From: Oculina patagonica
Taxonomy: Eukaryota
NCBI RefSeq assembly: GCF_052425735.1
Contig: NC_135759.1
Coordinates: 9,238,001 to 9,302,000, forward strand
DNA: 64,000 bases
Direction: 5' to 3'
Position numbers and translations under genes: made by a program. This document shows positions 8,851-47,675 of this stretch, in pieces. The notes under the pieces are model-generated. The model was not told the DNA's origin. It saw nothing but the letters and a program-made list of their open reading frames with translations, and did no database searches. The stretch's first letter is position 1. Each line of letters starts with the position of its first letter.

Positions 8851-11801
8851 CTATTTCCCGCACTTGGTTTTTATCCAACACCGCAAGCCATAAAAACCAA
8901 ACATTAAACACTGACACAAAGGCACACCAATAAACATAAGGCAGACCTGAGACACAACAGAGAGAACTGGTCTCCCTGTGTAGTCGGTCTGAGGGTAAAT
9001 ATATGGCATGCCAAAGGAATTGGTGCCACCGACCGCCCAGTAAATGACTGTAAATATAACATAGACTGCTCCGTTGAGCATCGGGTACACAACATGAAAC
9101 AAGCGAACAGGGATTGAACATAGCATGGTATCTACGATCATTGCTATGGCGTTAAATCCGTGGTAAACAATAGTAAACCCTCTTATTCCTTTATCTGGAT
9201 CATATAGTAAAATCCAGAACACAATGGTCACCATAAGGCTTCCCGATGCTGACATATTATAAATCACCCACATTGCTTTGTGAAACCAAGCCATTTGAGT
9301 GACCTGGGTACCCTCACGTGTGTCAGCAATGCAAGCAACTGTGCTGACATCACTCATATGTCTTTCTCCTAAGATATAAGTCGGTTCACGTATTTCTGTA
9401 TTGTTATTTGAGTTTCCACCGCGGTCTGTGGTATCGTCCTGCTTTCCTTTCGATTCAACGTTATTCATTCCATTCTCCATCTTGTTGCTGAGATTGTATC
9501 CTCCCGTCTTACTTCGTCTCCTGTAGTGCAGGGCCGTTACCATGGTAGCACAAACGAAGTACAGAGCCAACAGGACAAAGCTCCAGTTACTCAGCCAGAT
9601 ATACCATTTTTCATCATCGAATGTTCTTGCGATCATCCAACCAATGCAAAATGCGGCAATGACAAAACGATACAACAATACAAATGGCAAGCCAAACCAC
9701 TGAAAGGAAAATACAATTAATCAAATGCGTTCCTCAATGGCTCTTATTGTAGTTGAGCCTGCAATAATATACTATTTTGTTGAGAAGGTATGCAAACGAG
9801 GCGAAAGGGTCAACATATCGGTTTAAACAATGCAGAATGACCCTTTCGCTTCATTTAAGTGTCAAACCGCTGAGAACTGCAATAAGAGCTATTGTACGAG
9901 ACAAAATATTGCTTATTTGATATTCTAAAGAGGCTTCTGAGTGCAGATTAAAGGCCTGTTAAAAAGGTTATTCTAGGCTACAAGTTGTAATTTTCAATAA
10001 AAAAACATTATTAGCAAATAATGCTGTTTCTGCTGACTCAGCCAAAGATTAGCTCTCTCGATGTCCTGTATGTGTCCCGAACTTCTCTCCGAAAGGCAAT
10101 GTGAAGACGATGACCGACTATCCACAAAATAAGCAGCTTATCAATTTTTCAACGGCAATGTTCTCTTTGAGTAACAGAGAACTGGCGAACTGTTGTCACG
10201 TACGCTCTTTTTAGAGGGTCTCAATGGGGTTCGGCTAACGGAAGGTTTATTTCCGTTACGGTCAATAGATTAAGTGTGAAAAATTAATTATCCGTAGTTT
10301 TAAAAAAAAGAGTTAAAAATCAGCTTCAACTGGTATGAAACGTATTTATGTCCTTCGGAAAATCGAATTGAAAATATAGAGATACAGAACAACAGTCAAA
10401 GCTGTCAAAACTCTTGTCAACTCTTGCCATGACACATTCGGCAGACACTTCCAACACTTCCTGTTTCCTCGATTAAGAGTATCGGCTTTTCCAGGGACTA
10501 AAAAAATTTCTTACAGTTCACATTTTTTTACAGCCAACAGTTAAAAATTTTAAATTTTTACGCCTATCGGCTAAATGTTTGGCTGTTTTACGGCTTAAGG
10601 GCTAACCCCATTGAGGCCCTCTTTTTGGAACGAAAAAAGGCAATTCCCTAGTACACCATGGCCATTAGCAAAGAGCTATCTTAACTGACGTCATTTCTTT
10701 ATATCTTATATTTGAAGTTTTACCTGATAGGGCGCAAAAATAAGAGAACTCGTGATATACTTTATAGACCTGTAGAAAGGATTTCATTCATTATGGGCCA
10801 CTTTCATGTTATCTCGACACGTATTATACAAATTCAGTGAGTGCTTCACAAACCAAATTTAATTTAATGCCAATTTCAAGCAATTTATAACCAGAGAGGC
10901 ACAGGACCACTCATCCCTCTACCCCCATCCACTGCAGCCCGTCAAGCATAGCGACTTCGTTAGCATTTAGCATTAAACATATTTGACGTCAAACGTTACG
11001 CATGGTGAGTATGTTAACACACTTCGATATTCTTCCCGATATTCTGGCAATGTCTCTTACACGTCGATATTCCTATCGACGTCGATCGGTTTTAACCCTA
11101 CACCACAAGCTATCTTTCAATAATTTTATCAATAACGAAACTAAGGCCTTCGTCTTGTAATTCAGACAAATTCTTCAAATAGTTTCCTCATTAATACTCT
11201 GTGCAATGCAAATTTACGAACATAATTGCCCTTCAATAGCCATTACTATAATGTTTACAACAGAAACATTTTGAAACTGCTCACAGATCGGGTTTCGGAA
11301 ATATCAACCAAGACTTGTTCTGTTTCTGTTGCTGCTGTTGCAAGTTTTTCTTGGGCTCTCACTAAAAGTTGACACTCGGGTTAAAAAATAGTCCGAAAGG
11401 CATTTGCTAATAAAACGAATAACATAATAAGCCTGGGGACAAGGTTATTAACAATATTGCATTAGAAACATTGTTTACTTATATAAAGTTTCCACTATCA
11501 ACCTGTTTATATATCTCAAAACGGACATCTCGCCGTATTCTGTCCATGCAAGAACATGGCTTACATGCTTTGGACGTCTAAAACAAAACCTGACTTAACA
11601 GCTACAGACGTTTCACTATCTGACGTAACTTCCATTCCAGCGAAGCATGATCACTAAAGTAAATATTTTCCATATTTCGTCGAATTCACAGGTATATAAC
11701 AAAATAAAACTTACCGGAGATTGAACGAAATCCGCTGCGTCAGGATAAATCAGACCTAACTGAACTAGACGAAACTCTCTGCGTAGTACACTCAAGAACA
11801 T
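8851..11801 (-). CDS. protein rolling stone-like multi-pass membrane protein, paralog A (311 aa)
   Basis: Exon 1 11715-11801 (MFLSVLRREFRLVQLGLIYPDAADFVQSP, GT donor) joins in phase 0 to exon 2 8851-9699 (after cctttcAG, WFGLP...KTKCGK*). About six hydrophobic helices and the motifs LSNW, HGFN, PVRLFH and YIYP. Confidence 0.88.
10213..10622. mobile_element. MITE in the intron of paralog A (second copy ~25286-25697)
   Basis: TIR AGAGGGTCTCAATGGGGTT / AACCCCATTGAGGCCCTCT in a T-rich site; TSD not resolved. Confidence 0.7.
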
Positions 11802-12922
11802 TTTCCCTCGCAAATTCACAGGCTCCTCTATAATTCAAGTGGCCTCTAATTGTAAATAAAACTTCGTGTTAAACGACAGGGGGTAAACAACTCAAATAAG
11901 CCAATCAAAATCCTTTTCTACTGGTCTAATATTTTCAGGAAAGGTTTCTGTCATAAAAGTGTAATAATAACCTGTTATAAACGAAGCCTTCTTAAGTCGT
12001 ATACAAAGAGAATACCAGCCTGTGGCGTTTAGGGACCTTTAGCTTGCTGCGCTCTTCCGCACTCTCAATAACTAGGACCAATATTATTCATTTTTTTCCT
12101 TGATCAGTGAACTGTGGCTATCTCAAGACTATTAAAGCCATAACAGGTCCTGCCTTAGTCTACAACGAATTTTCTTTCTTAATTCTTGCTACGCCGTAAA
12201 TAAGTTAAAGAATGGTTGACAGCAAACATTATTTGTAAGAGGGCACCCTTTAGCTTCAAGTGCCTATAAGCGAAGCATTGTTTATGATGTTTGCTTCTAG
12301 TAGCATAGGCGCTCGAGTCATACAAATGTCAACTCTGAATATTGTACGGGCATTTTTTTTAACTATGAGCTCAAAGTGTTCTGTGTGACGTAGTTTTTAA
12401 AACTAAAAATTTCCCAAAGAATGTATGGGCTCATTTGCCAAGCGGTAATTTTGTAGTTTTTTAAACGCCGAATGTCCCTAAATACTACTTGCAAATTAAA
12501 GAGATTTAGATTTACAGCCTCTTCAAACGTATGGAGTCAATTGGTATATAACATGGAGCCTTCTCTATGTAAAGCCATATAATGATAAGACAAAATGTAA
12601 AAGATGCGAGCAGCAAAGTACTTTTAGTTTTAAGGGGAGGGGGGGGGGGGGGGGGGTTGGGGCCCAACACCTCCGTTACCACTTGCACTGAGATATTTAC
12701 ACTTTAACAACAACAATTGCAGGTTGTAACATATGTTCTCGTTTTACGTGGGAATTATGTTATCTTAATTTTTTTTTGCCTTTTCATGCCACCACAAAAC
12801 TGTTTAAGAGTAATCAATAGCATAAAGGAATGCCAAAAGATGTAAAAGTTATAACAGGAAAGAAAATTCAAATTTTGGAAACAAACACTTGTCAAATGTT
12901 GTTGCCATGAAAAATTCAATTA

Positions 12923-45853: not shown

Positions 45854-47675
45854 CTATTTTACACACTTAATTTTTATCCAAACTCGTAGCTTATAGAATC
45901 CAAACAGCAAACTCTGACACCAGGGAAGGCCAATAAAGAAAAGGCAAAGCTGTGACACAGCGGAGAGAACTGGTCTTCCTGTGTAGTCGGTCTGAGGGTA
46001 AATATATGGCATGCCAGACGAATTTGTGCCACCGACCGCCCAGTAAATCACTGTAAGCGCGATATATGACATGCTGTAGAGCATCGGGTAGATAACATGA
46101 AACAGGCGGACGGGAATGGAAGTGAGCATAGTATCACTGATCATTACTATGGAGTTGACTCCGTGAACAATAACTGACAAAGCGCTTAATTTATTCCTTG
46201 AACTGAAGAGCAGCAACCAGTAAGACAAGGTCACCACAAGGGCTGCTACTCCTGCGATGTTATAAACTACCCACAATGCTTCGTGAAACCAAGTCATTGG
46301 GAAGACCCGTGATGCTTCAGCACCGTCGGTAGCGAAATCAATTTCGTCAGCATCATCATGCACAAGACCATTGCCCACGGTAATCCCTGGCTGGCCTCCA
46401 TCGTCCGAATTTCCACTTGATGCAAAGTTCCTCATGCCATTTTCAGCCTGGTCTCCAACATTGTGCTCACCCTGTTTGCGTTGTTTCCTGTAGTGGATGG
46501 CCGTTGCTATGGTAGCACAAACGAAATACAGAGTGACGAAAGAGAAGCTCCAGTTACTCAGGTAAATCAACCACTTGGGTCCGTTGCGCCTGAAAATAAC
46601 TGCGCTCCAAATGATGGAGGAAAAGCAGAATGTGGCAATGACGAAACGGTAGAGAAGAACAACTGGTACGCCAAACCACTAAAAAAGAAAAGAGAAATCC
46701 AGTCACATTTCGATGTTGCCGAGAACATAGACTCCCTAATCTGATATTCTTTTTCTAGGGTCAAGCTCAAAATCTGCTACGTCCGTTCAGGGTATCAATG
46801 ACAATTATAAACAACATTTCTAGAAACCAATACGTCTGAATTCGAAGATTTAGCTGTAAAGAGATTCGCAATATCGACAGATCATGTAGTGGCGATCACT
46901 GATGTAACATGAACTGGCGCAGTTCACTTGCCACAATGCCCTAAAGATATCCCGGCAGATCTCGAAATCTCTTGCCAAGATTAGCCACTTCACTGTCACA
47001 AAAACTATACACAAAAGCACTGCGCCAGCGACAGTCAAAACAAAAAAGAAAACAGTTGGAAGCCGATTGTTTTTCCTTGTTGTTATTCAACATTACGCAA
47101 TGCAAACTGAACTGCCGTGTTAATAATTCATAGAATATATATCTACACAACAGAGGTATCTGATTACAAACTGCTTTAGTAACTACATAAAATGTGTTAC
47201 AAATATACATCTGGAGGCTTTTTTTTCTGCTTTTTTCTGCTTGGGGTATATGTTTATTGAACTTTAGGATTTCAGATAGGATTTTGGTCTTCATATGACT
47301 ACCACTGAGACTATAACGTAAACATAAGCAGGCTTTGGAAGCGGGCTAATTACAAAACTACTGCCACATTGCTAGCTATTACTTTTCATCAAATCCCAAA
47401 ATATTAAATACAAAATACACCATTAAAAATCGTCGAAGACGAGTGAATTCGATTAGAGATTGTAAGAGATAGATAACTGAACTTATGTTACCTTCTAAGC
47501 GATGGAAGCATATGTTTCCAAAACTAAAATTAAATTTGTAGATTTCTATATTCTATGAAACCCTCTGCTAGTATGAAATATAACTTACAGGAGATTGTGC
47601 AAAATCTGCTGAGTTGGGATACTGCAAACGGAAGTGAATTAAACGAAACTCTTGGCGAAGTACGCTCCAACACAT
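45854..47675 (-). CDS. protein rolling stone-like, paralog D (303 aa)
   Basis: Exon 1 47589-47675 (MCWSVLRQEFRLIHFRLQYPNSADFAQSP) plus exon 2 45854-46678 (after tttttTAG: WFGVPVVLLYRFVIATFC...NGPKWLIYLSNW...KIKCVK*). The frame is open throughout; the ORF track starts late only because no start codon follows the acceptor. Confidence 0.88.

Follow-up and report, generated by a model that had tools for sequence, protein, structure and literature searches.

At one locus of the coral Oculina patagonica, neighbouring genes of a single membrane-protein family carry threonine in some copies and serine in others at a position predicted to hold a catalytic nucleophile. Does this mark two kinds of enzyme, or one kind in which either residue will do? 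The locus is an array of genes for proteins of the rolling stone (Rost) family, within a stretch of 64,000 nucleotides (contig NC_135759.1 of RefSeq assembly GCF_052425735.1, positions 9,238,001 to 9,302,000; G000:C2:9238001-9302000 in our numbering) that we call the window and in which positions are counted from 1. An initial annotation, made from the letters alone, had read the array as a possible diversifying set of intramembrane lipid hydrolases in which a Thr-to-Ser nucleophile swap was coupled to a loop change. Our answer is different in part: a tandem Rost array whose products are distant homologs of the AIG1/ADTRP membrane hydrolases and keep the positions of their catalytic pair, with a Thr/Ser toggle that recurs, a loop that varies independently of it, and purifying selection. 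Taken as a whole, we think this reading is probably right, with appreciable room for error.

The Rost genes occupy positions 8851-47675, all on the minus strand, and these limits are exactly the stop codon of paralog A and the start codon of paralog D. We found five intact two-exon genes (A, B, B', C and D) and one truncated chimera (C'), which follow one another in the direction of transcription as D, C, B', C', B, A. The parts of the array are as follows.

8851-9699, minus strand: paralog A exon 2, Ser type (AGT at 9589-9591; His codon CAC at 9160-9162; long late loop at 9004-9033; protein P0009)
11715-11801, minus strand: paralog A exon 1 (29 amino acids, GTAAGT donor)
15169-15993, minus strand: paralog B exon 2, Thr type (ACT at 15886-15888; His codon CAC at 15460-15462; short late loop at 15322-15333)
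17411-17497, minus strand: paralog B exon 1
24550-25086, minus strand: C' exon 2 remnant, 98-99% like C (protein P0004, 176 amino acids, with the annotation 'protein rolling stone-like')
26773-26859, minus strand: A-like exon 1 upstream of C', with 28 of 29 amino acids identical to A exon 1
30202-31026, minus strand: paralog B' exon 2, Thr type (ACT at 30919-30921; His codon CAC at 30493-30495; short late loop at 30355-30366; protein P0001)
35647-35733, minus strand: paralog B' exon 1
40025-40849, minus strand: paralog C exon 2, Ser type (AGC at 40742-40744; His codon CAC at 40334-40336; long late loop at 40178-40207)
43196-43282, minus strand: paralog C exon 1
45854-46678, minus strand: paralog D exon 2, Ser type (AGT at 46556-46558; His codon CAC at 46163-46165; long late loop at 46007-46036; protein P0017)
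47589-47675, minus strand: paralog D exon 1

All six copies match the Pfam family Rost (PF21534, 'Protein rolling stone') with 59-88 bits (E 1e-16 to 1e-24), where the gathering score is 26.8 bits. Exon 1 of each gene has 87 nucleotides (29 amino acids, of the pattern M..LR.EFRL.QF.L.YP..DF.QSP) and ends at a GTAAGT donor; the large exon 2 opens at TGG (WFG...) right behind an AG acceptor. For A, B' and D the model with two exons is borne out by the annotated proteins (P0009, P0001 and P0017, respectively).

The observations from which the initial annotation set out proved accurate. Around the putative nucleophile, B and B' have the motif W-Y-I-(W/K)-L-T-N-W in the alignment, while the motif of A, C and D is W-x-I-x-L-S-N-W; re-reading the codons confirmed ACT in B and B', AGT in A and D, and AGC in C. 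The His of HG(V/F)N is encoded by CAC in all five intact copies. The late loop reads WAASGG-FIYP in B and B' versus WAVGGTNS(F/S)GMPYIYP in A, C, D and C', and the alignment confirms that the Thr copies are without six residues there.

The proposal that rolling stone-like proteins share the AIG1/ADTRP fold also held up, both in profile alignments and in structural models. A profile search of 1.84 billion representatives gave 2,999 Rost relatives at E <= 0.001, and a deep Rost profile of 184 diverse near-full-length sequences was aligned by hhalign with two AIG1/ADTRP alignments, one of 21 rows and one of 138. The match reached a probability of 93-94% (E 1e-7 to 4e-7, score 53-56) and was collinear over 145-147 columns, from the second transmembrane helix (TM2) to TM5/6; in controls that keep composition, reversed profiles scored 15-16 and 20 column shuffles at most 20.2. 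The AlphaFold model of P0001, of moderate quality (predicted local distance difference test, pLDDT, 68; predicted template-modelling score, pTM, 0.60), has six helices (33-57, 64-108, 165-194, 201-220, 223-251 and 265-301). Foldseek with this model ranked Drosophila Rost (O44252; E 2.4e-4, 21% identity), a member of the same Pfam family PF21534 as the coral copies, at the top; the best non-Rost matches were human ADTRP (probability 0.97, template-modelling score 0.51) and hamster ADTRP (probability 0.84) at ranks 2 and 4, and the rows below ADTRP had template-modelling scores of ~0.1-0.3. The reciprocal search started from a coral AIG1 homolog, a single-exon gene for 227 amino acids (L001 1477-2160, G000:C12:16724217-16724825; 198 bits to PF04750). 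With its model (pLDDT 86), AIG1's own family took ranks 1-8 and was followed by Drosophila Rost, at probability 1.00, template-modelling scores of 0.62/0.53 and a root-mean-square deviation of 4.6 Å over 237 columns. The coral has another AIG1 homolog, a gene of several exons on C9 (~30.146-30.157 Mb).

We conclude that Rost is, with good support from the profile comparison and the models, a distant homolog of AIG1/ADTRP (FAR-17a) with the same six-helix fold. At ~16-19% identity, the two families have in common the six-helix core, the L-T-x-(W/I) hydroxyl residue at the start of TM2, L-Y-F nine residues on, a TM4 His with Asp/Glu ~10 residues on, P-x-R and (I/V)-Y-P. Unlike AIG1/ADTRP, Rost has an additional conserved N-terminal exon, and in the coral copies TM2 and TM3 are linked by ~70 residues of charged, disordered loop; where AIG1 has N-H-x-M-H, Rost has a single His. 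Rows matched in the ESM Atlas carry the names 'FAR-17a/AIG1-like' and 'Pr6Pr', and a literature search on the latter name found nothing related. Foldseek against the PDB gave no match at E < 1, VIA-align against 48,161 chains gave generic helical hairpins only (residues 21-116), with no solved relative in these libraries, and NCBIfam had no match for Rost or for coral AIG1.

Catalysis has been assigned in the literature to T43 and H134 of AIG1 and to T47 and H131 of ADTRP (PMC8123165, the review used here). The hhalign comparison places T65 of P0001 on T46 of coral AIG1, the invariant Thr of F-K-F-L-T-F-I; in this column B and B' have Thr, and A, C and D have Ser. It places H207 of P0001 on the second His of N-H-x-M-H (NHYMH), and in a fish ADTRP of human length (230 amino acids) residue 131 is that second His. 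The human ADTRP sequence, in the form that we take it to have, fits all eight other positions listed in the review and puts H131 there too, which we use as a lead only. Read in this way, with numbering that comes partly from such human sequences, the catalytic His (H134/H131) appears to be the second one. In the models of both P0001 and coral AIG1, TM2 starts 2-4 residues before the Thr, and TM4 starts 7-8 residues before the His. Alignment and helix placement together thus give good support to the view that the Rost Thr/Ser and His occupy the positions of AIG1 Thr43 and His134, as the initial annotation had supposed.

These positions are well conserved across the family. Among 143 representatives at 50% identity the nucleophile column holds Thr in 114, Ser in 10 and another residue in 3, with 16 not covering it, that is, Thr in ~90%, Ser in 8% and a hydroxyl residue in 98%; the His column holds His in 136 of 142 (96%). 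The positions of the pair are thereby conserved in ~90-96% of Rost representatives. In our animal AIG1/ADTRP sample, which is mostly non-mammalian and has no human entry, Thr is found in 138 of 138 sequences. Because Thr is invariant there, the Ser tolerated by Rost (8% family-wide, and in most of this coral clade) is a real natural variant. We looked in the literature for an AIG1 mutant with T43S and found none.

Variation of this kind has a precedent. The ATGY superfamily (AIG1/TMEM164/GPC1/YwaF/YpjA) comprises six-helix proteins, hydrolases and acyltransferases among them, in which the His on TM4 is invariant and the nucleophile on TM2 varies: AIG1 has Thr, TMEM164 and GPC1 have Cys, and YwaF and YpjA have Ser, Thr or Cys (Reed et al., bioRxiv 10.1101/2022.07.06.498872). 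The branches that they list do not include Rost (PF21534), which matches them in its six helices and, by sequence position and helix placement, in a hydroxyl residue on TM2 and a His on TM4. The nucleophile varies between families in ATGY; in Rost Thr and Ser vary inside one family, and even inside one gene cluster. The array is one of two-exon genes for six-helix membrane proteins, and these, as distant homologs of AIG1/ADTRP, would belong to this superfamily. As the most likely mechanism we propose that the His activates the Thr/Ser hydroxyl for an attack, inside the membrane, on a lipid ester; the acyl-enzyme so formed would be resolved by water (a hydrolase) or by a lipid acceptor (a transacylase). 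That Rost proteins are hydrolases is an inference. What is likely to last is the result at the level of the family: Rost appears, from sequence profiles and models, to be a further likely branch of the AIG1/TMEM164-type intramembrane acyl-enzymes. To our knowledge, rolling stone has been without a molecular function since it was cloned in 1997. [quoted passage not shown] The Drosophila gene is known from a myoblast-fusion phenotype, while the coral genome has at least 13 Rost loci above the cut-off, in several clusters. At least seven copies lie outside the window:

C10:9343053-9364161: Rost loci outside the cluster
C10:18884703-18890473: Rost loci outside the cluster
C7:23151479-23151877: Rost locus outside the cluster

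Six of these seven (on C10) carry Thr, and the motif of the C7 copy, a match with one stop, is unreadable. The locus at C10:18890030-18890473 has two in-frame stops.

Do the two residues define two lineages? Beyond the corals, the named representatives of Ser type belong to the annelid Capitella, the echinoderms Amphiura and Antedon and the hemichordate Ptychodera, and Owenia, Aplysia and Branchiostoma are among the Thr-type ones. In the coral tree (76 rows), the deep branches and the outgroup are all Thr, and the clade that holds A-D has 40 Ser and 14 Thr. This tree requires at least 6-8 changes between Thr and Ser, and a tree with all Ser sequences together is worse by 526 log-likelihood units (p-AU 3e-49 in the approximately unbiased test, for a Ser group chosen with the tree already in view). 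A single split into Thr-type and Ser-type paralogs is not supported. Fitch parsimony, on a tree of the 'quick' kind that leaves 24 forks open and with parsimony as the sole guide to direction, has Thr change once to Ser at the base of the clade with A-D and revert five times, including once on the way to B/B'. By this reconstruction the ancestor of the cluster probably had Ser, and the B/B' lineage reverted to the Thr typical of the family, the opposite of the Thr-to-Ser direction first proposed. The comparison of sequences thus presents Thr/Ser as a toggle of one base (ACT<->AGT) that the family tolerates and that has flipped many times. Had Ser been common and randomly scattered in the family, the idea of a meaningful swap would have fared worse; it is rare family-wide (8%), so that half of this concern falls away, yet it is recurrent and common in corals, and that half stays. 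The Thr/Ser difference within the window is best seen as ordinary variation of the family, like that already described for the superfamily, and not as a coupled functional split.

The history of the array bears directly on how many events its five genes represent. Self-BLAST showed three duplicated blocks: 10015-12922 with 25088-27980 (97.1% identical), 13767-16003 with 28804-31036 (96.9%) and 22749-25088 with 38219-40563 (98.1%). They have the breakpoint 25088 in common and enter into two parts of the array.

10015-19303, strand not applicable: older copy of the tandem block (A intron and exon 1, then B), matching 25088-37970 in pieces at 80-97% identity
22749-25088, strand not applicable: duplicate of 38219-40563, with the C 3' flank and the 3' two-thirds of C exon 2, stopping at the breakpoint that made C'

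The simplest reading is a single recent tandem duplication, with breakpoints in the A intron and in C exon 2, that yielded both B' and C'. In C', an A-like exon 1 and part of the A intron meet, at ~25088, a C-like exon 2 of which the 3' two-thirds are present; C' is without TM1, TM2 and the Thr/Ser motif and retains the His and the long loop. Synonymous divergence (dS) is 0.085 for B-B', 0.06 for C-C' and 0.5-1.6 for the other pairs. Because B and B' are related by a segmental duplication of ~97% identity and a dS of 0.085, the two Thr copies are one evolutionary lineage. Pairwise ratios of nonsynonymous to synonymous divergence (dN/dS) are 0.17-0.41, C-C' excepted (0.08, on nine changes), and indicate that the five intact copies are under purifying rather than diversifying selection, against the earlier description of the cluster as a diversifying set.

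Since B and B' are one lineage, the coincidence of Thr with the short loop in the window amounts to n = 1. Across 69 coral homologs the combinations are Ser with long loop in 20, Ser with short loop in 20, Thr with long loop in 17 and Thr with short loop in 12, and an independent-pairs test of association was not significant. In a related cluster of another coral, where the gene order differs and which we used for Thr/Ser and loop states only, the short-loop B-like gene has Ser and its sister Thr. Coupling of the nucleophile swap to the loop change is thus not supported, and the six-residue deletion reads, in these alignments, as a separate event in the B-like lineage.

Several points weigh against the reading of the array as AIG1-type enzymes, in addition to the moderate quality of the P0001 model, the Ser group chosen after the tree was seen, and the open forks and parsimony-based direction of that tree. 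No copy matches Pfam Far-17a_AIG1 (PF04750) at E <= 1, so the Rost copies are not members of that family itself. A first, shallow hhalign comparison (33 coral Rost and 21 AIG1 sequences) gave a probability of 3% over 23 columns, in which the Thr motif was aligned exactly. We know of no biochemical evidence for any Rost protein. One coral Rost subfamily keeps the Thr (WFIYLTNWS), but its TM4 His is replaced by Gln (QILNTVF); its 15 rows, which come from many corals, group as a well-supported clade, and in Oculina it is represented by the following gene.

G000:C10:9341500-9351499, L006 1539-2417: Thr/Gln subfamily member, P0065 (coral homologs P0065-P0088)

Because of this subfamily the dyad is not universal in Rost. 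The alternatives are that the His can at times be dispensed with, or that part of the family is not enzymatic; the subfamily may be a pseudoenzyme or use a different base. Finally, Drosophila rost was described as a 'potential transmembrane protein' with a role in myoblast fusion (PMC2138187).

A possible objection that follows from these points is that Rost proteins are not enzymes at all: the Thr/Ser and the His would be structural polar contacts between TM2 and TM4, left from an enzymatic ancestor, in proteins that act as scaffolds or fusion-related factors. We judge this unlikely, and take it more seriously than any other alternative. No activity has been reported, myoblast fusion being the sole known role (PMC2138187), and a subfamily that lost the His has still been conserved across many corals. 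A different His, that of RLFH (H229 in P0001), is better conserved than the one on TM4, at 98% versus 94%. Thr/Ser exchange is, moreover, typical of hydrogen-bonding positions in membrane helices. Set against these are the conservation of the hydroxyl in 98% and of the His in 96% of representatives, the rare and scattered loss of either residue, and the exact fall of the pair on the positions of the dyad in a superfamily in which every member tested is an acyl-hydrolase or a transferase. These lead us to keep to the reading of Rost as likely acyl-enzymes.

Granting enzymatic activity, the Thr and Ser copies may have been kept together for different chemistry, whether in the rate of deacylation, in hydrolysis versus acyl transfer, or in the lipid; we find this rather improbable. 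If it were true, the cluster would offer a natural experiment on the reason for the unusual Thr of membrane enzymes of the AIG1 type, and Rost, the fly myoblast-fusion gene included, would be an unrecognised lipid-remodelling enzyme. The stricter form of the idea, that the Thr-type and Ser-type copies are specialised enzymes (by substrate, or as hydrolase and transacylase) with the swap coupled to the TM5-TM6 loop in a diversifying cluster, is in our view still harder to sustain. The two traits do coincide perfectly within the window; by topology, the TM5-TM6 loop is predicted to share one face of the membrane with the beginnings of TM2 and TM4, where it could cap the site; and the invariant Thr of the 138 AIG1/ADTRP sequences means that the identity of the residue can matter in the sister family. 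But the coincidence is that of the single B/B' lineage and dissolves among the 69 coral homologs, the other coral's short-loop B-like gene has Ser where its sister has Thr, long-loop Thr proteins are common and include every outgroup, and dN/dS is 0.17-0.41. We therefore retain the toggle that is independent of the loop.

Least credible, to our mind, is that the likeness to AIG1/ADTRP is convergent or an artefact of six hydrophobic helices, Rost being an unrelated fold family: the missing link between Pfam hidden Markov models, the weak first hhalign and the modest Foldseek values (E 0.24 and 0.014, template-modelling scores of ~0.5-0.6) would fit it, but the reversed and shuffled controls reach ~20 at most where the match scores 53-56, the match is collinear from TM2 to TM5/6 with LTxW...LYF, H..N/H...D/E, P-x-R and (I/V)YP, and the structural matches are reciprocal and rank directly behind each family's own members.

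Transcripts add to the gene models. One contig from X1, an RNA-like run, connects 15993 with 17411 in paralog B, skipping 1417 bases whose ends are CT..AC on the plus strand, that is, GT..AG on the minus strand, and this joint was not found in the DNA-like run X15. Because the joint has GT..AG ends and X15 holds no such joint, B is transcribed and spliced as modelled; the differences listed for this contig leave its Thr codon untouched. The expression evidence consists of contigs that cover the genes A and B, with a splice joint seen for B, and the lack of RNA-like coverage over exon 1 of paralog A in three runs does not make A silent. RNA-like contigs extend over ~1.3 kb past the B stop codon (13800-15169, minus strand), which suggests a long 3' untranslated region, and one contig near B skips 38 bases (15063 to 15102). 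Paralog C (40025-43282, minus strand) has an intact two-exon frame and no 100%-identical protein among the database matches, where A, B', C' and D each had one; it may be absent from the deposited annotation. B would fall in the same 90% cluster as B' in the protein database.

Other features of the window lie between or beyond the Rost genes. Open reading frames of 135 and 158 amino acids at 22768-23175 and 38263-38739 (minus strand), within the duplicated block downstream of C' and C, have a long identical stretch in common (…GRTCKFIDIPTCTAVQGTPANVQAQSAS…). A run of 379 N at 59197-59575 is an assembly gap or masked sequence. At 12794-13589 the contig depth in DNA-like X15 rises from ~60 to ~28,000-30,000 and the RNA-like runs peak too, which points to a repeat of very high copy number between genes A and B; in one DNA contig the sequence jumps from 12920 to 13496, and the insertion there may be polymorphic.

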